64,000 bases of DNA from sequence record LT598654.1. One strand, 5' to 3'. Both the position numbers and the translations under genes were made by a program. The notes below the pieces were generated by a model. It made no database searches and had not been told where the DNA came from. It saw only the letters and a program-made list of their open reading frames with translations. Position 1 is the stretch's first letter; every line of letters starts with the position of its first letter. Below are positions 31,849 to 41,678 of this stretch, one piece after another.

Positions 31849-34410
31849 CTAGTCGTCAGGGCAGTTAAGTATAGGCTTGGCTTTATCTTTAGCCGACTGC
31901 GCATTTGCAGCTTGTACCGAAATAGTATTTGAAGGATCACCAGAACAGTAGGCGGTATACGTATTTAATGCTGCACTCTCAATTCGGTCATTAAGAGTGG
32001 TGGACGCACCTGTGTTATATTCTTCAAAACTTTCAAATGAACCTTCGCTTACAACGGCAGGTGCCGTATTGATAATATTCGTATAGCCTTCTTCTGCTGC
32101 GACACCGTTCGTTGACGTCCAAGTTGAAGAACCTGATATACGAACAACAGTTATCTTAAGGTCAGTAATGTGGCTAGGTACTGCACCGATCGTATCATTC
32201 CAAGAGTCACCTTCTGCTGCTGTTACCTCTGTAAGTGATATTGTGGTTGTTACCGCATCCCCTTCCAACGGATGGTCTGTCGGGTCGCTATCATAAGTAT
32301 AGAAAGTAGACGTACTAGAGTATCCGTCCGTAGCATCTGTAATATACAAGATACTAACCTTAGTCTGATTGGTCGGTACATTAGCAAGAACATGTGCAAC
32401 GTATGTAGTAAACATTGTTACAGATGCAAACTCACCACCTATGATATTAGCGGGGTCAATTGCATAATCATTTAGGATAGTTTGTATAGCAACATCACGA
32501 CTTGTTGTTACACCATTTGTAGTTACATCACTTGCGTTTGAGGTTGAACCACTCATATCACGGAATATATAGATAGTAAACTGCTCACCTTCACTAGCTA
32601 ATTCGACCGTCGTAACACTAGGTGAACTGTCTAAGATAGTACCGATACCTTCTGCTTTCGTAATACTTCCACGAGAAGGATTTGAGATAACAACTTTGAA
32701 TGTTTCGTCGTCTTCTTGAACGTCATCACATTTAACTGTTACCTGAACTGTCTTGGTTGTTTCACCCTCTGAGAATGTAACGGTTCCACTATTAGCCAAG
32801 TAGTCAGTACCTTCAGTTGCAGTTGCTCCCTGAGTTTCCCAATCAACGGTAACATCGCTACCTTCAATTGCTTCATCCGATGTAATGGTAAACGTTGCAG
32901 TTGTATCGGTATCGCTAGCACTGCACTCGTCTACATCCACATCACTGATAGAAAACCCTGTCTCATTACCTAGAGTCACGCAAGGCATTTCGAATGTGAG
33001 TACTGCATCGTCGCTATCACTAACACCAACCGTACCATAGTCGTTGTCTTCTACAGTAACAGATATATTGTAAGGCAACATGGCTCGGCTATCTACTTCC
33101 GCAACACTTCGACGTAGCGTAAACAAACCTACTCTACCGTTTTCTTCTGTACCTGTTAAAGACAGATTAGGGTGAGGAGCAGACCAAGTGTACGAGTAAT
33201 TACGCAGTTGCCAATCCGATGGGTCATTGAATTTAACTTCTACCCTAGCCGTTGCCTCATACGTGTCTCCTACGTTTAAGCATCTGTCTTCACACGGTAT
33301 TGTTTCATCTTCTACATCAGGAGGAGGCGGTAGAGGAGGATCAGGGTCTGGTTCAGCTTCTTCGTATTCCTGTACTGATTCTTTGTGGTAGATCTCCAGA
33401 GCTTTACCCCCGTTGACCCTGAACCACCAGAACGAACTCGATACAGTCCCACCTATTTCAGCCCAGTTATCACGACCACTACACGTAGCAAAACCCGCTG
33501 AACCACCTGCGTTATCTGCATACTGGATTAGAGTTCTGTCCAGATACATCTGACCCTGCATACATAATTCATCGTCACCGCGAGTATCGTCGGTAACAAA
33601 AATATACTCTTGGTCAAACGGTATCTTGGCTCTGGATATGTTTACTTTGCTTCCCTGAGGAGAACTATATTTAATCTTTTGCGTGAACGTATTGTAGTAA
33701 CCTAAGTTTTTGTTATACACCATAGGTCTTCGATAAATACGATACATTTTATGACCACCCGGACCTTTAAATTCAGTTCTAGGTGTAGTCGATAATCCGC
33801 TAAGTCTAAACCATTCATCCCATCCCTGGAAACCGCAGTACTTAACCATTCGACTATGGAGCTTGTTAGCGAATGAATAAGCCGATGCAAAGTTATAGAA
33901 GCTTACTGTAGCATAATATTTCTCGGTACTTGAACGGTCACATTTGACTACGAATAAGTATTCATAATCCTGTGCAAAATCACTCAGTACCAGAGTTCTA
34001 CCTTGTGATGTATTCCACAGTTCAAAAGTATGAGTGTTATCGTCGGGATGCAGGTTCCATACAGCAGGGTCTGGGTTTAGGTCGCGCTCCCAGATTTTCA
34101 ACATGTACGGATTACCTTTGGTTCTATAGAAATCAAATTTCTTATAACCATTGGAAGCTACCGTAGCCCTTGTTATTTGGTCGAGACCGTTAGACATAAA
34201 ACCGTCTGTAACATTAGAAGACGAGGGAGGCTGAATATCCATATCAGCAGGTATCTTGATAAACACGTTACCGATTTCGTCTTCCCTGTCGGTATCTACC
34301 ATGTGAATCATATATTCTTTGTTTGGTTGCCAGTCAAAAGGAACAGACCTAACCTGAGAGCTAGCGTTAGGTCTTGCCCAGACTTCAACCCATGGGTTGA
34401 TTATTGCCAT
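31849..34410 (-). CDS. adhesin-like virion protein with Calx-beta and vWA-like domains
   Basis: Calx-beta FSISDV...GTDY...GTVTF..GET.KTV.V....DD..E.DETF.V..SNP; DMSGS MIDAS motif and ILYITD. Confidence 0.8.
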   Translation of the reverse strand: MAIINPWVEVWARPNASSQVRSVPFDWQPNKEYMIHMVDTDREDEIGNVFIKIPADMDIQPPSSSNVTDGFMSNGLDQITRATVASNGYKKFDFYRTKGNPYMLKIWERDLNPDPAVWNLHPDDNTHTFELWNTSQGRTLVLSDFAQDYEYLFVVKCDRSSTEKYYATVSFYNFASAYSFANKLHSRMVKYCGFQGWDEWFRLSGLSTTPRTEFKGPGGHKMYRIYRRPMVYNKNLGYYNTFTQKIKYSSPQGSKVNISRAKIPFDQEYIFVTDDTRGDDELCMQGQMYLDRTLIQYADNAGGSAGFATCSGRDNWAEIGGTVSSSFWWFRVNGGKALEIYHKESVQEYEEAEPDPDPPLPPPPDVEDETIPCEDRCLNVGDTYEATARVEVKFNDPSDWQLRNYSYTWSAPHPNLSLTGTEENGRVGLFTLRRSVAEVDSRAMLPYNISVTVEDNDYGTVGVSDSDDAVLTFEMPCVTLGNETGFSISDVDVDECSASDTDTTATFTITSDEAIEGSDVTVDWETQGATATEGTDYLANSGTVTFSEGETTKTVQVTVKCDDVQEDDETFKVVISNPSRGSITKAEGIGTILDSSPSVTTVELASEGEQFTIYIFRDMSGSTSNASDVTTNGVTTSRDVAIQTILNDYAIDPANIIGGEFASVTMFTTYVAHVLANVPTNQTKVSILYITDATDGYSSTSTFYTYDSDPTDHPLEGDAVTTTISLTEVTAAEGDSWNDTIGAVPSHITDLKITVVRISGSSTWTSTNGVAAEEGYTNIINTAPAVVSEGSFESFEEYNTGASTTLNDRIESAALNTYTAYCSGDPSNTISVQAANAQSAKDKAKPILNCPDD

Positions 34411-34418
34411 ACAACTTC

Positions 34419-37400
34419 CTAGTGTTTTTGATCAACAGGGGCGTTATGAACAAGAACAGGATTCTTACCTGCGTAATAAGTATCGTTTTCTTCAACGTCA
34501 ATCACGATTACATCCAATCGATCTTTAACATGACGTAGAGTTCCAACGTGAACTTCATTACCGTTCATTCCAAGAAGCTTATCGCCCATCTTAATATCAC
34601 GCACATCCAACCAGTGCCACGTATCATCACGCTTAACCAGGATGTGGTGCTGTTGGGTAATCTTCAAGTCGCTATTGATAACCCAGTACTCTTTGTACCA
34701 GTTCATCTTAGCACTCTTAACCGTTGACGCAACATTAGAAGAACCTTCAAGTGATTGAGTTGTCCAATCTTCCCAGCCTTCTGTGTTTTCGTCAATCATA
34801 CCTGGAATTTGTCTTCCTATGATTTCATCACCAGGTCTTAGAAGTTCAGCAATCTTGGTAGTACCGTCAGCCATTAGAATAGGTGTATCTAAAGCTACAC
34901 ACCCACCGCCGCCTCCGCCAGAGTAAACATTTGCTTTCTGTTGGATAGTGACTGTAATTGGACTAGACTTCTGTACGTTACCTAAATCATCTTTAACAAA
35001 TATTTCTACTTCAAAGATAGCTGTTCCTGCCTGAGTTGTACTAGCAGTAGTCCACTCATAAGCAATAGACAGTCTATCATTGTTGGCATGGTATTCATCG
35101 TAAGGAACAAACGACCATGTATCTCCGTAACCATCTTCGTTTTCAATATAGAAAGCGCAATACGGAAGTATTAATATACGGTTAGCTGCATTAGGTATTG
35201 TTGCTGTGCTCCTTGTTACCGACCATTTGTATTCATAGGTACGCGCAGGATCGAATTCGAATTCTGCACAAACACCTGATACCATTGAATTAGCAGGACT
35301 CAACGTAGGTGAACTAACAGTCGTTTGAGTTTCTGTCATTGTCATATACGCAACAGAACCGGCGTCCTCAGTGTAAGAAACATCGGCATACTGGAGTTGT
35401 GTAGTACCTTCGTTAGCCCAACTGTAATTGATTGCGTTCGCATTTATTTTAAGCGCAACAATCGTTTCGGGATGCGAGTAAGTGGTAGAACTTACTAAAG
35501 CTGTACCTACCGAAGTAAGCGAATCTTTAACAATGTTCATATCACCGCTTGCACTAGTCGCAGTACCTTCCAGTATAGTACCTGTGCCTTCGCCTCTACC
35601 TATTACACCTGCACTTGGATTAGAGATAACAACCTTAAACGTTTCATTAGGGTCGCTTACTGTATCCGTGAAAGTGTTGACAGGAATCTCGGCACTACCT
35701 GCACCTGCTGGAATTGTCAGGGTTCCGCTTGTAGACTGGTAATCTACTTGGTCGCTACTACCACCTGAATTAGTTCCACCGACTGTGCTCAACGAGAACA
35801 AACTCATTAATGCCGCGTCTTCCTGTAGGTCAAGGATGTTGGTTACACTCATGCTGTCCCACAAGTAAGAGTTGTTTCCTGCATAGTCAATAATTGACTG
35901 AACAGAGATACCGTCGGTAGTACCCATACCAGTCGCAGTAGTGTTATAACCAATGTCAACGTCTTCACTGATTCCTAACGCATTAATAATACTCTTTGCG
36001 TTGGTATTCATTTTATAGAACAGGTCTGTATACGAACTCTTTGGACTGAAACCCGCAGTTGCAATAATAACTTTAGGGTCATTGGAGTTCTTAGCCATTC
36101 TGCTTAGTGCGACGGCAAAAGCACTAGACTGTCCTAAGTTGAACACTTTGTTTTTGTAGCTGTTCAGGTCAGATATATCACTGTTTTCATTAACGTGGTG
36201 ATTAATCAAACCGAATTGGTCTACAACAACAATGTCGTAGTCATTGAGAATATCTTTATGGCTCTTCCATGTTCCGCTATCAGGATCAATTGTGGTACGA
36301 CTGTAACCGTGAGGTCCGTAGTAGTTGATTACCTCAGTATCTACCGTAATTCCATAAATATTGGAAAGCGATTCTGTCATGTGACCCATTGCAGTAGTCA
36401 TATCATAAACAGCATCTTCTGTCACACGACCGCCGTAGTAATCGTCACGCTCAATATACGAATACTGCCAAATACGTTGGTGAGAAAGAACCAACATTTT
36501 AATCGAACTATTAAGAGTACCGAACCTGTCTTTCAAAAGGTTGGCAATCATTTTGTAGTAAGGCGGTAATTCGTTAAACGAGTTAACTGCTATATCGGTA
36601 TTAGAGATAACATCCTCTTGGTACACACCTGCAAAGTAGTTCATTTGCGTAGTACCAGAAGTACCGAACGGCCCGTACAGACGGTTAGGGTTTGCTTCTA
36701 GCAATAGTGTGTAGTTGTAGGTTTCATCTTTGTATACAGCACTAGTGATGATTCCTTCTTCACGATACAGAGGATACGGATTACCTACAGCAGGAACTGC
36801 GTCAGGACTAGACTGTGCTGTACCGTCCACTGTTGTATACTGAACCGTAATAGGATCAGATTGAGGTACGTTTAAGCTTACAACAAATCGTGCTTGCTGA
36901 CCTTCATACGCAAAAGCATCATTGATATTAATCTCAATATCAGGACACGCATCAATGGTTTGGTCATCAATCTGAATATCCAACAGAGGAATATAACAAC
37001 CTACCAAGTAGTTCCAGCTTGCATCGATAGGACAGTCAATACGTACACTAACATCAAGCAAGTCATCATAGTTGTCATTCGCCTCTAACCTGAACCACTG
37101 AATGTACTGAGTACCGGTTCCTTGTTTGGCAGCAACAACATTACCTTGCGCATCAATAACACTAGCAACATACTTGAAGTCACCGTACCCAACAACCTTA
37201 ACACTAGCAACACTGTCACCAATATCGTTCATTGTGTAATGGTCTTCTGTGCTGTAGTGACCTGCGCTGGTAATACCACTCGGAGGCTGCTCACAGTTCC
37301 AACGATTTTCTTTGTAGCCCTGCCTGTTTGCGTCATACAGCATGTATTCGTAGGACTCAATATCCGCACCATACTCACGTTGCTGAGCCATTACTTTAAC

Positions 37401-38546
37401 TACAATGTCAGGAACAGGATTTTCAAATCTCCACGGGTCAAAGACGATACTCATTAACCCATCTTCAAACTTGGTTTCTAAGGTAGACGCGATACGCTCA
37501 CCGCCGTGATAGACTTCAACCCAGTCACCGTTATCCCACGTTTCGTAGTTTAGATGCAGCACATAAGGTCCTGTGCTTGGGTCAAGTAATCCTACGTTGT
37601 GTACGTACTCCGTCCAGTATTGACCATTGTTCTGACGTTCACTGAAAGGATAAACTCTGGAATGTGTTGGTGCAGGAAATAAGCTAGTACCAATATACTC
37701 AGTTGTTCGTATTTGAGCCAAGTGTATATTGTTACCAGGTTCAAACACAGGCAAGTTCAAAACTTTCTTAGGCCCAATTACAGAATACATCCAGCGTTGC
37801 TTTTCTTCACTACGTATTCTGATCATCACACGGTCTTCACCGCTTCCGATTGCTGGGTCAAGAGTGAATTCTAACTTGCCTCTACCTGTTACACGACCAC
37901 ACGTACTGGCAATCAAGGCACCTAGATAGTAAACATCAACACTCATTCCGTACGTAGAATAAGAAGCGTAGCAGATTTCAAATATACCTGCTAAGTCTCC
38001 ACATTCGTAGATGGTTTCTGCGATAGCACTACCATTACTGAACGTATGAGTCCAACACATTGCTGGGTTCTCATAAGTACCGTGACCCAAGAAACTATTT
38101 GTTCCTGGATACGTATAGCTTTCTTTTGTGCCGTCGAGTCCTGGACGTTTGATAGCTTTACCCTCAAACGTTCCGAATGTTTTCTCAACACCGAAGCCTA
38201 CTTCACCTGCATCTGGTAAGTCGTAACCTGCAGGATAGCCTGTTAAGATATTGAACTCAGCACCGTCCGAGCCAACTCCGTTACCCGAGCCAGCTTCTTC
38301 TAAGGGAATACTACCACACGCAACACTTGCCAAGCTTGCTGCTGTACCGCAAGGGTTATCTAATATAGGGTCATAAGTACAGTCTACTGCTAACCACGTT
38401 GTGTTTCCGCTGTCCCGTATATGGGTTTGTTCTGGATAGAAACGAATCCAATTGCTGTTAAAACCGTCTCTGAAATAAAACTCAGAGTTACATTGGTCTA
38501 ACCAGCCATTGTCTAATGCGTTTCTTACTGTAAGTCTAGTACTCAT
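34419..38546 (-). CDS. large fibre/adhesin with split Calx-beta and C-terminal Hint domain
   Basis: 1375 aa; Calx-beta halves around an insert; GGGGG-CVALDTPILMADG...TQQH...VHN-A. Confidence 0.85.
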   Translation of the reverse strand: MSTRLTVRNALDNGWLDQCNSEFYFRDGFNSNWIRFYPEQTHIRDSGNTTWLAVDCTYDPILDNPCGTAASLASVACGSIPLEEAGSGNGVGSDGAEFNILTGYPAGYDLPDAGEVGFGVEKTFGTFEGKAIKRPGLDGTKESYTYPGTNSFLGHGTYENPAMCWTHTFSNGSAIAETIYECGDLAGIFEICYASYSTYGMSVDVYYLGALIASTCGRVTGRGKLEFTLDPAIGSGEDRVMIRIRSEEKQRWMYSVIGPKKVLNLPVFEPGNNIHLAQIRTTEYIGTSLFPAPTHSRVYPFSERQNNGQYWTEYVHNVGLLDPSTGPYVLHLNYETWDNGDWVEVYHGGERIASTLETKFEDGLMSIVFDPWRFENPVPDIVVKVMAQQREYGADIESYEYMLYDANRQGYKENRWNCEQPPSGITSAGHYSTEDHYTMNDIGDSVASVKVVGYGDFKYVASVIDAQGNVVAAKQGTGTQYIQWFRLEANDNYDDLLDVSVRIDCPIDASWNYLVGCYIPLLDIQIDDQTIDACPDIEININDAFAYEGQQARFVVSLNVPQSDPITVQYTTVDGTAQSSPDAVPAVGNPYPLYREEGIITSAVYKDETYNYTLLLEANPNRLYGPFGTSGTTQMNYFAGVYQEDVISNTDIAVNSFNELPPYYKMIANLLKDRFGTLNSSIKMLVLSHQRIWQYSYIERDDYYGGRVTEDAVYDMTTAMGHMTESLSNIYGITVDTEVINYYGPHGYSRTTIDPDSGTWKSHKDILNDYDIVVVDQFGLINHHVNENSDISDLNSYKNKVFNLGQSSAFAVALSRMAKNSNDPKVIIATAGFSPKSSYTDLFYKMNTNAKSIINALGISEDVDIGYNTTATGMGTTDGISVQSIIDYAGNNSYLWDSMSVTNILDLQEDAALMSLFSLSTVGGTNSGGSSDQVDYQSTSGTLTIPAGAGSAEIPVNTFTDTVSDPNETFKVVISNPSAGVIGRGEGTGTILEGTATSASGDMNIVKDSLTSVGTALVSSTTYSHPETIVALKINANAINYSWANEGTTQLQYADVSYTEDAGSVAYMTMTETQTTVSSPTLSPANSMVSGVCAEFEFDPARTYEYKWSVTRSTATIPNAANRILILPYCAFYIENEDGYGDTWSFVPYDEYHANNDRLSIAYEWTTASTTQAGTAIFEVEIFVKDDLGNVQKSSPITVTIQQKANVYSGGGGGGCVALDTPILMADGTTKIAELLRPGDEIIGRQIPGMIDENTEGWEDWTTQSLEGSSNVASTVKSAKMNWYKEYWVINSDLKITQQHHILVKRDDTWHWLDVRDIKMGDKLLGMNGNEVHVGTLRHVKDRLDVIVIDVEENDTYYAGKNPVLVHNAPVDQKH
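34443..34901 (-). other. Hint (BIL/intein-like) domain 1
   Basis: block A Cys1, block B TxxH, block F DVEENDTYYAG, terminal HN; +1 residue is Ala. Confidence 0.88.
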
Positions 38547-38554
38547 AATAGCCC

Positions 38555-39049
38555 TTAGACAGGTTTAATCCAAAGAGCGCCTGCTCCAACGGGGCCTGGA
38601 TCACTATCGCTGATATAGATAGCAACACGACCATCGAGTCCTGCTAAACCTCTTTCACCTTGAGGTCCGCTCGGTCCTTGTTCACCCTGTTTACCTTGTG
38701 GTCCACGTACACCGCGTTCGCCTTGAGCACCCTGCGGCCCTTGACAGCCCCGCTTACCCTGCAAGCCTTCTTCGCCGATAATACCATCGACACCTGCTGT
38801 ACCTGATACACCTTGAGGTCCTTCTGAACCTGAACCTACATCACTTTGAGTCATAAAGTTTTTGATGGTTAGTGTATCGTAGCCCGGTATCGAAAGAGTT
38901 AGTGTACCAGTTACGTTATCAAACGTTCCTGATATTTGAGAGGAATCGTTGCTGTCTGCTGTTACAGTTAAACCGGTTCCTGTATTCTCTACATCCCCAC
39001 TAACTGTACCTGCTTGAATCATTTTTAAACTAGGTTTAGTTAAGCTCAT
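38555..39049 (-). CDS. collagen-like fibre protein
   Basis: MSLTKPSL start shared with 30275-31117; about 23 Gly-X-Y triplets. Confidence 0.85.
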   Translation of the reverse strand: MSLTKPSLKMIQAGTVSGDVENTGTGLTVTADSNDSSQISGTFDNVTGTLTLSIPGYDTLTIKNFMTQSDVGSGSEGPQGVSGTAGVDGIIGEEGLQGKRGCQGPQGAQGERGVRGPQGKQGEQGPSGPQGERGLAGLDGRVAIYISDSDPGPVGAGALWIKPV

Positions 39050-39058
39050 ATCTATACC

Positions 39059-39697
39059 CTACGCAAATTGGTCTAAGTCGTCGTCATACTGACCGATAGC
39101 TGGATTGACCCATATCGCACCAGGTCCTGCTGACGCACCTGGATCAGTTTCAGAGATAATAATGTTGATAGTACCTGCAGGACCTTGATCTCCTTGCGGA
39201 CCAGTAGGACCTGTTTCTCCTGTAGGACCTGTTATTCCCACTTTACCTTGAGGACCTTGTGCTCCAGTAGGACCGCGCTCACCCATAGGGCCTTGTACAC
39301 CTTGAGGGCCGGGAGGACCAACTTGTCCGGGTCTTCCATCTTCACCTCTAGGTCCTTTGTCTCCGGTTGGTCCTACAGGTCCTGCACAACCTTCGGGACC
39401 TTCTTCGCCGTCCCTTCCATCACGACCGTCCTGACCGTCTAAGCCTGGTTCACCCTGAGGCCCTTGAGGTCCTTCTGGTATACTATCGAAAGTAGGGAAT
39501 CCTGTAATAGCAACATCCTGACCATTGGAGAATGTTAGTGTTAGGACTCCGCTTCCCTGATCATAAAAGCCAGCGGTTATCTCACTGGCTGTTGTTACTG
39601 TTTCGTCACTTGATTTAAGCTTGCCTGATTCGACAACAACGGCACTACCGTCGGCACCGCTTGCTTTAATCATCGACACTGGAATTCGTGTAAGCAT
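39059..39697 (-). CDS. collagen-like fibre protein
   Basis: about 34 Gly-X-Y triplets; IIISETDPG..GAIW tip motif. Confidence 0.85.
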   Translation of the reverse strand: MLTRIPVSMIKASGADGSAVVVESGKLKSSDETVTTASEITAGFYDQGSGVLTLTFSNGQDVAITGFPTFDSIPEGPQGPQGEPGLDGQDGRDGRDGEEGPEGCAGPVGPTGDKGPRGEDGRPGQVGPPGPQGVQGPMGERGPTGAQGPQGKVGITGPTGETGPTGPQGDQGPAGTINIIISETDPGASAGPGAIWVNPAIGQYDDDLDQFA

Positions 39698-40158
39698 CAG
39701 TCTACCTTGTTGTGAACTAGTATGCCGTTCATAAAGAAAGAATCAAACATACATACTTTTAAATCCGAACTCTGCGCTCTTTCCGTAATATACTCATGCG
39801 ATACTACTTCAACTGTTTCAAGCTTGTCGTTCATAAGTAGGTCACCGATTCTAACTGACTTAGGCATAACCCATTGCCAGATGGAATTGCGACACACGAA
39901 CAGAGGATAGCCCGTTACAAAGTGCATAGTGTTTATTTTGAAGTAACCCTCACGGTAGCTGTCTGTGCGCCTTGAAACAAAACTCTCACAAAGAAAGATT
40001 GAATCACGGTTCTCTGTAGCCCAATCCATTACCGCATAATCATTACCGTAACGAGAACCGGGCATGTTAGGAATTCTAACGCACGAAACCACATCACCGA
40101 AGTGTAAGTCCCTTGCATTTCGTTTACTGTTAACGCATGTGATTACTTGTTTCAACAT
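39697..40158 (-). CDS. stand-alone degenerate Hint-like protein
   Basis: ARDLHFGD, VRIGDLL and FFMNGILVHN match Hint blocks; Cys1 and TxxH absent. Confidence 0.7.
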   Translation of the reverse strand: MLKQVITCVNSKRNARDLHFGDVVSCVRIPNMPGSRYGNDYAVMDWATENRDSIFLCESFVSRRTDSYREGYFKINTMHFVTGYPLFVCRNSIWQWVMPKSVRIGDLLMNDKLETVEVVSHEYITERAQSSDLKVCMFDSFFMNGILVHNKVD

Positions 40159-41678
40159 TATTTTTTCGCCACCATTACTGCGTTATGAATACACACAGGA
40201 CTTACACCACCGAAATAGTTATCGTAAGGTTCTGCGTCTATTATAACAACGTTGATAGGTTCGTTTATTTGTTTGATTGACTCTACCTGGACTTCGGATT
40301 CTTTTCCGAACAATGTATCGCCTACCTTAATGGATTCAGCACCATGCCATCCCCACTGATCACCACTCTTTATTAGCAAGGGGTGCTGCTCGGTAATTTT
40401 AACATCATCGTTGATAACCCAATACTTGTCATACGTAGTGTGCATAGCAACCCTGGCTATAGTAGGTACTGTCTTAACATCACTGAGTTGTGTTGCTTTC
40501 CAGTCCTTCCAACCGGGTTCAGATTCGTCAAGCATTGAATCACAGGTAAATGCCTGTAACGTATCACCTACTTTAATATGCTTGGCTTTGACTTTCTCTC
40601 CAGACCAGAGCAAGATTGGTGTATCTTCGTGAACACAACCTCCGCCTCCTATTACGATAGGTGCTCCCTCTTCCTCTTCTTCATCTGTAGTCCTAGAATT
40701 AGAACCTGTGAATCGAAAGGTTATTCCGTCGATAACATGTTTCTTATTGGAGTTACCTGTATCAGTTATAGTGAGTTTAACATCACCTGAGTACGAGAAG
40801 CTTTCACCTGGATCAATAACAACATAGCAGGTTATCTTGAGGCTTTTGTTTGTAACAGAACCGTCTATGCTAACGTCACTAGAGTTGAGGCTACCATCTA
40901 CCTGTTGCCAATTATACTTGAAAGGACCGACACCCCCTGAGAAATTACTCAGTACAAGAGTTACCGAACCTCCATAGCTGTCAGTAGTAACCAAACTCAG
41001 ATTAGCACTCTGGTCGCTGACACTTCCTTTCATATCTGCTATTTCTATAACAGGTGCTTCTACAACAACACCGTCTTCATAAGGTACAGCCCAGATAAAG
41101 TAGTTGTCAGGTGGAATATCAGAACCGTAGTATGCGTCACCGCTTGCTGTAGGTCCTGTTTCTCCTTTAGGACCTATCAAACAACTTGGTCCTGTCGGTC
41201 CTATAGGTCCTTGGAATCCTATAATACCGGGTTCACCTTCAGCACCTCTCGGTCCCGGGCTTCCGACAGGACCGTATAGACCCGTGATGCCTAATTCACC
41301 ATCGTCACCGTCTAAGCCTGCCTCACCTACAATTCCTTTGACACCTTGTGGGCCTTCACATCCTGTTTTACCTTCTTTTCCTATTCTACCTAGTCTTCCA
41401 GGCTTTCCGTTTTTACCTGCAACTCCCTTAGTACCTCGAGGACCTTCACCTAGCTGAGCTACAGTTAAAAACCCTGTGACGGTTAATAGTTCACCGTTAG
41501 TTCGAACAAAGTTTAATTCGCCTGTCTTTTTGTTAAAACCTACTTGCGATATAAGTAACTCACTTGTAGGTTCTTCCGATGAATATTCTATAAGACCTGA
41601 CGTTGTATTTACTTTCAGTGTAGTACCGTCACTTCCGTCCTTAGGTACTACACTGTTAATGTTAGCTTCTTGTGCCAT
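40158..41678 (-). CDS. collagen-like fibre protein with C-terminal Hint domain
   Basis: about 32 Gly-X-Y triplets, Ig-like domain, GGGG-CVHEDTPILL...TEQH...IHN-A. Confidence 0.85.
   Translation of the reverse strand: MAQEANINSVVPKDGSDGTTLKVNTTSGLIEYSSEEPTSELLISQVGFNKKTGELNFVRTNGELLTVTGFLTVAQLGEGPRGTKGVAGKNGKPGRLGRIGKEGKTGCEGPQGVKGIVGEAGLDGDDGELGITGLYGPVGSPGPRGAEGEPGIIGFQGPIGPTGPSCLIGPKGETGPTASGDAYYGSDIPPDNYFIWAVPYEDGVVVEAPVIEIADMKGSVSDQSANLSLVTTDSYGGSVTLVLSNFSGGVGPFKYNWQQVDGSLNSSDVSIDGSVTNKSLKITCYVVIDPGESFSYSGDVKLTITDTGNSNKKHVIDGITFRFTGSNSRTTDEEEEEGAPIVIGGGGCVHEDTPILLWSGEKVKAKHIKVGDTLQAFTCDSMLDESEPGWKDWKATQLSDVKTVPTIARVAMHTTYDKYWVINDDVKITEQHPLLIKSGDQWGWHGAESIKVGDTLFGKESEVQVESIKQINEPINVVIIDAEPYDNYFGGVSPVCIHNAVMVAKK
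40182..40637 (-). other. Hint (BIL/intein-like) domain 2
   Basis: Cys1, TEQH, DAEPYDNYFG, HN; paralogue of Hint 1. Confidence 0.88.

Follow-up and report, generated by a model that had tools for sequence, protein, structure and literature searches.

C-terminal BIL-like Hint domains on proteins of a fibre gene cluster in the jumbo phage NCTB

Three Hint genes and their products

We analysed a stretch of 64,000 nucleotides (the window) of sequence record LT598654.1, the genome of phage NCTB. NCTB is a jumbo phage with a circular genome of 257,877 bp that was assembled from surface water, and it is placed in the "Lupandier" group of hairy myoviruses together with the Pseudomonas phages PaBG and Lu11 and Erwinia/Dickeya jumbo phages (PMC7412058; PMC6143709). 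Three intact genes on the minus strand of the window, here called A, B, and C, encode Hint domains. In A and B the domain lies at the C-terminal end of a longer protein and is followed by a short tail; C is a stand-alone, degenerate copy (Table 1; positions are those of the window, and adding 62,000 gives the coordinates of the record). GenBank already names all three as intein-domain genes, hence the presence of intein-like domains is not new. What is new is the type, the spread, and the likely action of these domains: we found no paper that had worked them out, nor, in the literature searched, any paper on C-terminal Hint domains of phage fibres.

Table 1. Genes, Hint domains, and flanking features in the window (aa, amino acids)
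Feature	Position	Strand	Remarks
Gene A	34419-38546	-	1375-aa structural protein; GenBank BN7874_132, "large intein domain protein"
Gly linker of A, Gly1210-Gly1215	34902-34919	-	directly before Cys1
Hint of A, Cys1216-Asn1368	34443-34901	-	block B TQQH, aa 1297-1300
Family insert of A, MIDENTEGWEDW	aa 1250-1261	-	inside the Hint of A
Tail of A, APVDQKH (7 aa)	34422-34442	-	single Lys is Lys1374; disordered in the model
Collagen-like fibre protein without Hint, 164 aa	38555-39049	-	context
Collagen-like fibre protein without Hint, 212 aa	39059-39697	-	context
Gene C	39697-40158	-	153-aa stand-alone degenerate Hint; GenBank BN7874_135, "intein domain protein"
Gene B	40158-41678	-	506-aa collagen-like fibre protein; GenBank BN7874_136, "putative phage tail protein, contains intein domain"
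Gly linker of B, Gly344-Gly347	40638-40649	-	before Cys348
Hint of B, Cys348-Asn499	40182-40637	-	block B TEQH, aa 429-432
Family insert of B, MLDESEPGWKDW	aa 382-393	-	inside the Hint of B
Tail of B, AVMVAKK (7 aa)	40161-40181	-	after Asn499

Cys1, the block-B Thr and His, and the final His-Asn pair are all present in A (His1367-Asn1368) and in B (His498-Asn499). The initial annotation of this DNA, which spanned 34443-40637, that is, the Asn codon of A to the Cys1 codon of B, had described catalytically intact Hint domains at both C-termini, ending in His-Asn and followed by Ala and a short tail (APVDQKH, AVMVAKK). All of this can be read in the two proteins. The first residue after the terminal Asn (position +1) is Ala1369 in A and Ala500 in B, where class 1 inteins have Cys, Ser, or Thr. 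An Ala at this position rules out class-1 splicing, and the expectation that canonical splicing would not take place was correct. Two details need to be adjusted. The linkers had been described as four to five Gly, which is right for B, with four, and wrong for A, which has six. The two copies named are both intact, but the third, degenerate one at 39697-40158 had been omitted.

The Hint domains of A and B are about 38-39% identical (E = 3e-40), and, as judged from this alignment, a chance resemblance is excluded. The only extended DNA similarity between their genes covers 74 nucleotides around block B at 72% identity (34617-34690 versus 40353-40426). The copies are old, without recent duplication or gene conversion.

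Protein B, which combines collagen repeats with matches to tail-fibre PHROGs, is clearly fibre-like in its sequence. Protein A consists of a conserved N-terminal part of 517 residues, a Calx-beta domain, a variable distal part, the Gly6 linker, the Hint domain, and the tail. It is large and adhesin-like, and its gene belongs to the same fibre cluster as that of B. Both hosts had been called fibre proteins in the initial annotation; this holds for B, and for A we infer it. The N-terminal 517 residues of A are shared with orthologues of about 670 residues in 61 other phage records, where the distal part and the Hint domain are missing. The GenBank coding sequence of A (BN7874_132) has 1304 residues, its start lying 71 codons past the ATG at 38546 (38334-38546, minus strand). 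Since the additional N-terminus is kept in a TARA orthologue (1376 residues) and in Erwinia/Dickeya phages, with tblastn matches beginning at residue 3-4, the longer open reading frame is the likely gene.

Two kinds of repeats or domains recur among the neighbouring products. Collagen (Gly-X-Y) repeats are found in the proteins of 164, 212, and 506 residues (38555-39697 and 40638-41678, minus strand), of which the longest alone adds a domain of about 130 residues, a Gly linker, and a Hint domain. Calx-beta domains are found in a protein of 853 residues (31849-34410, minus strand; E = 2.7e-18) and in protein A (E = 7.8e-10), and probably explain adhesin-derived GenBank names such as "aggregation factor core protein MAFp3".

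Copy C emerged from a six-frame scan of the window with a profile built on the Hint domains of A and B (E = 8e-11). Its start overlaps the stop codon of B by one base, and it is 23% identical to the Hint domain of A. It lacks both an N-terminal Cys1 and TxxH, and its last residues are His-Asn-Lys-Val-Asp. In a comparison with BFVD it reaches template-modelling (TM) scores of 0.86/0.92, which indicates a complete Hint fold. Without Cys1, however, it cannot form an N-terminal thioester. Two marine NCTB-like contigs keep copy C at about 40% identity (11534-11992 in L013 and 11144-11605 in L014). In all three versions Cys1 and the block-B Thr and His are missing, and His-Asn followed by Lys or Arg is kept. 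The Erwinia, Dickeya, and Yersinia phages compared have no copy C. Metagenomic "stand-alone" Hint proteins of about 130-160 residues were considered as its relatives and rejected: they keep TxxH and look like truncated gene calls from an internal Met. Copy C may be a partner, a decoy, or a structural piece.

The wider family, its tail lysine, and its fold

When 1.84 billion cluster representatives were scored with a profile built from the two NCTB copies, 2805 proteins matched at E ≤ 0.001, 609 at E ≤ 1e-10, and 38 at E ≤ 1e-30; a word-indexed protein search gave just two relatives. Our statistics on residues and tails are based on the best 150 of the 2805 proteins, which contain 155 Hint copies that cover most of the profile. 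The initial annotation had suggested a survey of homologues, and in these best 150 the terminal position, Cys1, and His-Asn all recur. Among 150 copies with a recognisable His-Asn, 83% end no more than 15 residues from the end of the protein. The median tail has seven residues, and 16 tails consist of a single residue, which is Lys in 15 cases. Where residue 1 could be placed in terminal copies it is Cys in 112 of 116, and His-Asn is near-universal. The residue before Cys1 (position -1) is Gly in 70 of the 116, and a run of at least three Gly precedes the domain in 45. Cys, Ser, or Thr occupies position +1 in only 16 of 125 terminal copies, which leaves 109 without a nucleophile. Relatives that are less than 50% identical to each other keep Cys1, the block-B Thr and His, and His-Asn, whereas the rest of the domain diverges.

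The insert that A and B share (MIDENTEGWEDW / MLDESEPGWKDW) had been considered private to these two copies. This is not the case. Of the 155 copies, 117 and 103 have Trp at its two Trp columns and 105 have Asp at its Asp column, and on this alignment the insert is a hallmark of the closest relatives.

In 87 relatives, the N-terminal partners of the domain include collagen repeats (nine proteins), phage tail-collar fibre domains (three), fn3, Ig, PKD, Flg_new, and Calx-beta. The genes in the marine NCTB-like contigs follow PAAR and gp25-like baseplate genes. One family member lies in the prophage tail module of a bacterial genome, and another between large tail genes and an endolysin gene. Outside one jumbo-phage lineage in the cultured-phage collection searched, the matches derive from assemblies of metagenomes and genomes, and at least one of them lies in a prophage. 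A scan of IMG/VR with patterns derived from the two NCTB copies gave no confirmed match. Five metagenomic proteins (P0014, P0111, P0126, P0136, and P0150) carry two to three Hint domains in tandem, with linkers of one to five residues, mostly containing Lys, and then Cys. These tandem proteins recall the repeated BIL units of BUBL loci.

Lys occurs in 122 of the 125 short tails; going by how much Lys these proteins contain, 19.5% would be expected. In a control set of 61 long open reading frames of the window, 46% have a Lys within their last seven residues. Lys makes up 16.6% of tail residues compared with 3.6% overall, and nearly every tail has exactly one. Its position varies: 25 tails have it at +1 and 65 at +4 to +6, and in 82 tails it is either the final residue or the one before. 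Tails with and without a Ser or Thr at +1 alike contain it. Hint domains that are not terminal, including those in tandem arrays, have a Lys within the first eight residues after His-Asn in 20 of 25 cases. The tails were part of the profile, but a single column contributes only a few bits to scores of 86-210 bits. We therefore judge that selection bias cannot explain the Lys. Going by its conservation, the tail Lys is the most obvious candidate nucleophile. The initial annotation was silent both on this residue and on the Thr found at +1 in most cultured orthologues.

The fold of the domain was modelled with AlphaFold2 from an alignment of 68 sequences (the two NCTB copies and 66 relatives). 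The model of the Hint domain of A has a pLDDT of 94.7 and a pTM of 0.89, and the tail alone is poorly defined; a single-sequence model reached a pLDDT of only 31. Foldseek returned 62 PDB matches at E ≤ 0.001, and all 50 of the 50 listed are Hint-fold proteins, that is, BIL domains, inteins, and Hedgehog. The first is the BIL domain of Clostridium thermocellum (2LWY; target TM 0.83), followed by BIL2 of Tetrahymena BUBL1 (6Y75/6TMM). Class 1 and class 3 inteins rank below the BIL domains, and Hedgehog (1AT0) is at rank 20. Scored against PDB sequences, the family profile gives a similar order (6Y75, 1.5e-15; 2LWY, 3e-14; inteins, about 1e-7; Hedgehog, about 3e-4). The model indicates that the domains of A and B adopt the Hint fold, and model and profile both place them closest to BIL domains, with inteins and Hedgehog more distant. 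An action like that of Hedgehog and BIL domains had been proposed initially. The BIL half of this proposal is well placed, as BIL domains are nearest in sequence and fold, but Hedgehog is the most distant class and the terminal Asn is kept in A and B.

Of the features that define the HINT superfamily, A and B have the fold, the Cys1 nucleophile, and the block-B TxxH, and copy C lacks the latter two. A and B also show the sequence features of type A BIL domains: a His-Asn end, no nucleophile at +1, variable host proteins, and BIL domains as nearest relatives. In BFVD the three NCTB proteins come first among the structural matches, followed by "Hint domain", "Fibronectin type III", and "PASTA" proteins of uncultured Caudovirales, with "Collagen triple helix" proteins of uncultured Caudovirales lower in the ranking. 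Pfam gives sub-threshold matches of the isolated domains to Intein_splicing and Hom_end_hint, and finds PT-HINT at E ≤ 0.001 in 56 of 87 relatives (best E = 6.6e-34).

Cultured relatives of NCTB keep the order of the genes. In the Erwinia phages Alexandra, Yoloswag, and Y3, the Dickeya phage AD1, and the Yersinia phage fHe-Yen9-02, a tail protein of about 1500 residues is followed by a protein of about 780-810 residues, the collagen and Hint protein, two short collagen-like fibres, and an A-like protein. Eight orthologues of B, which are 30-98% identical, invariably have Gly at -1, Cys1, the block-B Thr and His, and His-Asn. The +1 residue is not constant: among the B orthologues it is Ala in NCTB and a 96%-identical relative, Thr in P0002 and four cultured phages, and Val in fHe-Yen9-02. 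Taken together, Thr at +1 is found in Alexandra, Yoloswag, AD1, Y3, SNUABM_7, and P0002, and Met in Sen-NF. Among the eight B orthologues the poly-Gly run and the longer form of the insert are confined to the NCTB lineage, and the insert is six residues shorter in the Erwinia, Dickeya, and Yersinia phages. A TARA orthologue (in L013) has a tail of one Lys after His-Asn.

One orthologue of B has no Hint domain at all. Protein gp099 of the Dickeya phage JA29 (324 residues, "virion structural protein"; 2501-3475 in L007) ends in ...ARNPK. It stops where the proteins of Alexandra, Y3, SNUABM_7, and Sen-NF continue with a linker of five to seven residues, Cys1, and the Hint domain. It also has no counterpart of the tail, whereas an intein-less allele would have its exteins joined. 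There is hence a working fibre with an end much like the one that N-terminal cleavage would produce. Its single terminal Lys resembles what would remain after the precise loss of a Hint domain with a one-Lys tail.

In the collection of cultured phages searched, the Hint domain turned up in the NCTB/Erwinia/Dickeya/Yersinia lineage only. The tblastn search of cultured phages with the domain undercounts, since SNUABM_7 is missing among the matches listed and yet has a complete Hint domain. Sen-NF also bears a Hint-like C-terminal part. The Hint domain of A is 44-51% identical to those of unrelated metagenomic proteins, which is more than it shares with that of B (39%); apparently the module can pass from one fibre gene to another. 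Free-standing HNH endonuclease genes lie in or beside the fibre cluster of Yoloswag (6657-7514 in L003) and Alexandra (17001-17828 in L002), and none is found in this region of the NCTB window. In the window as a whole, the sign of the GC skew switches near 20 kb and near 50 kb, matching blocks of genes on opposite strands, and no tRNA genes were found in its 64 kb.

Self-removal and the competing readings

We consider it reasonably probable, by analogy with type A BIL domains and from the sequences and the model, that the Hint domains of A and B are autoprocessing modules that remove themselves from the C-terminus of the fibre. On the observed side are the identity of the domain, its fold, the conservation of its residues, its terminal position, and the Hint-less orthologue. 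Each chemical step, and the absence of the Hint domain from virions, we infer. Type A BIL domains have the His-Asn end of inteins and no +1 nucleophile, form an N-terminal thioester, and are cut at the C-terminus by Asn cyclisation; cleavage products dominate, and ligation takes place by aminolysis once the Asn has cyclised, when a freed amino group attacks the thioester (PMC4031507; PMC7664689). In NCTB, each module would hang from the distal end of a fibre-cluster protein by a flexible tether of Gly. After folding, Cys1 would attack the carbonyl of the Gly at -1 in an N-S acyl shift aided by the block-B Thr and His, yielding a Gly thioester. The terminal Asn would then cyclise with the help of the penultimate His and free the short tail. 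Finally, the thioester would be resolved either by water, which is cleavage, or by an amine of the freed or still attached tail, which would amount to ligation without a +1 nucleophile. The mature fibre would have lost a Hint domain of about 17 kDa and would end at the Gly linker, with or without a short Lys-bearing peptide.

Three observations speak for removal of the domain and against its retention: catalytic residues are kept at both junctions whereas the +1 residue drifts, the domain lies at the extreme C-terminus, and the JA29 orthologue does without it. The neighbouring collagen-like fibre genes without a Hint domain (38555-39697) also support the idea that the domain is dispensable for a mature fibre.

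Several points weigh against self-removal. In the alignment with 2LWY the position of the block-F His is Asp in both copies, so Asn cyclisation may be slower or may differ. The isolated domains score only 22.9 and 24.0 bits against the Pfam family PT-HINT (PF07591), below the gathering score of 27.7 bits. The label "virion structural protein" does not say which part of the protein is in the virion. Plain removal also does not explain why a conserved and catalytically degenerate Hint gene lies next door, why a single Lys is kept in nearly all tails, or what the benefit of a domain that is merely discarded would be.

The conserved Lys would find an explanation in isopeptide splicing, a special case of self-removal with a defined acceptor. 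Here the epsilon-amine of the tail Lys would attack the Gly thioester, Asn cyclisation would free the Hint domain, and the fibre would end in a mini-peptide joined through Gly-(epsilon)Lys. Besides the excess of tail Lys, nearly always one per tail and retained with or without Ser or Thr at +1, the frequent Gly at -1, often within a Gly run like the C-terminus of ubiquitin, fits this reaction. BIL2 of the Tetrahymena thermophila BUBL1 polyubiquitin-like locus, the closest solved relative by the family profile, is reported to form such a bond, in which the ubiquitin-like domain upstream is linked by its C-terminal residue to the epsilon-amine of a downstream Lys (PMC8616854). However, the position of the Lys ranges from +1 to +13, so that no fixed geometry is implied, and the tail is disordered in our model. 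The Lys may instead assist Asn cyclisation, favour solubility, or follow from a general bias towards Lys at C-termini, and the Hint-less JA29 orthologue has no such branched end, though it does end in Lys. Overall, we hold this form of splicing to be unlikely. We regard it as quite unlikely that the thioester is used in trans, joining the C-terminal Gly of the fibre either to a second virion protein, through one of its Lys residues, or to the host surface, through an amine. BIL2 does conjugate its upstream domain to several other substrates in trans (PMC8616854), a flexible Gly tether would give the activated end the freedom to find a partner, and the degenerate copy C and the two Hint-less collagen fibre genes adjoin as conceivable partners. 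On the other hand, the near-universal tail Lys would compete as an internal acceptor, and general chemistry makes it doubtful that a thioester would last on free virions until contact with a host. In addition, family members are found in very different phages with no common neighbour gene.

Retention of the domain without any processing is very unlikely in our estimate. The Hint domain would then be a distal knob with a structural or receptor-binding role, and its catalytic-looking residues would be a legacy. Copy C, which lacks Cys1 and TxxH and is nevertheless conserved in three NCTB-like genomes, indicates that the Hint fold can be kept for a non-catalytic role, and orthologues are labelled as virion structural proteins. 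Yet a legacy is hard to reconcile with near-invariant Cys1, block-B Thr and His, and His-Asn among relatives less than 50% identical. Receptor-binding tips are usually the most variable part of a fibre, but in these proteins it is the fibre body that varies and the Hint domain that is conserved, and the JA29 fibre functions without it. Scarcely any weight remains for the reading as mobile mini-inteins, which would rejoin a very short C-extein to the fibre by splicing. A size of about 150 residues is that of a mini-intein, the Thr at +1 in six of the orthologues (Alexandra, Yoloswag, AD1, Y3, SNUABM_7, and P0002) would permit class-1 splicing, and the similarity of the Hint domain of A to unrelated metagenomic ones suggests that modules are exchanged. 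Against this, both NCTB copies have Ala at +1 and 109 of the 125 relatives have no nucleophile there, there is no homing endonuclease, and the hosts are variable fibre or adhesin proteins rather than conserved sites in enzymes. The Hint-less allele of JA29 lacks the C-extein instead of having joined exteins, and inteins are more distant than BIL domains in both sequence and fold searches.

Self-removal remains the reading that we favour. New here is a terminal BIL-type Hint domain with a minimal, Lys-bearing C-terminal flank on phage fibre proteins. By its profile matches the family is large and mostly metagenomic, and its nearest members are almost all at protein C-termini. Self-removing C-terminal domains of fibres so far known are the S74 intramolecular chaperones. 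If self-removal is true, there is a second and chemically different maturation route for receptor-binding organelles, via a thioester that is also able to ligate. If the domains merely fall off, our results add phage fibres to the known range of BIL biology, which is a modest step. Ligation is a real possibility, with the tail Lys as the most likely acceptor. More tentatively, and with considerable doubt, one can see the terminal Hint domain, throughout a large family of phage fibre and adhesin proteins, as a built-in ligase that needs no energy, handing the Gly thioester of the fibre to its own tail Lys or else to a Lys of a different molecule, in the virion or on the host surface. The fibre end would then be isopeptide-capped or cross-linked, a viral counterpart of the conjugation by BIL2 that is independent of an enzyme cascade. 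The single tail Lys makes a sharp prediction about the product, and ties the family to BIL2, the one Hint domain for which isopeptide bond formation is reported. Hint domains that are terminal by nature and have minimal flanks are also of practical interest as tools for protein ligation.

Comparison with known self-processing domains

Type A BIL domains, represented by 2LWY, resemble the NCTB domains in Cys1, the block-B TxxH, the C-terminal His-Asn, and the dispensable +1 nucleophile. In both, the hosts are variable proteins of a surface or secreted type, not conserved enzymes. In contrast to type A BIL domains, however, the NCTB family sits at the very end of the protein, with one to 15 residues and a single conserved Lys after it, and its hosts are phage fibre or adhesin proteins. 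It also has an additional Trp-containing insert of about 20 residues between blocks A and B, and Asp in place of the block-F His.

BIL2 is the best profile match and a top fold match, and its upstream partner ends in Gly. The transfer from Gly to a Lys epsilon-amine reported for it matches the pattern of a Gly at -1 and a tail Lys in the phage domains. BIL2 is eukaryotic, though, and has folded ubiquitin-like domains on both sides, whereas the phage domain has a fibre upstream and an unstructured stretch of one to 15 residues downstream.

Among Pfam families, Pretoxin HINT (PT-HINT) is the best for the A and B copies, though below threshold. PT-HINT, a family of polymorphic toxin systems, sits upstream of a C-terminal toxin domain, which it is presumed to release by autoproteolytic cleavage. 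The domains of A and B precede seven residues and no toxin domain, and a role in releasing a toxin was rejected for this reason. With class 1 mini-inteins they share the Hint fold, Cys1, TxxH, and His-Asn, and some orthologues the Thr at +1. They differ from them by the Ala at +1, a C-extein of seven residues, and a host site that is not a conserved one in a conserved protein.

The Hog part of Hedgehog offers a parallel in its Gly/Cys junction and in its C-terminal position, from which it frees an N-terminal functional part via a thioester. In Hedgehog, a sterol-recognition region follows the Hint domain. After the domains of A and B there is no such region, only the tail of seven residues, and transfer to a sterol was rejected as their function. 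Hedgehog uses the first step only, the N-S acyl shift (PMC7664689), whereas A and B keep His-Asn, and it is the most distant Hint class in our searches.

The S74 domains of tailspikes and fibres are a functional analogy only, as C-terminal fibre domains that remove themselves. Peptidase S74 helps its parent polypeptide to fold after it has detached (PMC7824862). Its fold is unrelated and its chemistry relies on Ser-Lys, and an S74 chaperone was rejected as an identity for the NCTB domains, which have the Hint fold and no Pfam match to S74 in A or B. In A and B a run of Gly separates the Hint domain from the fibre, and a tether this flexible argues against the rigid, templating role of an S74-type chaperone.

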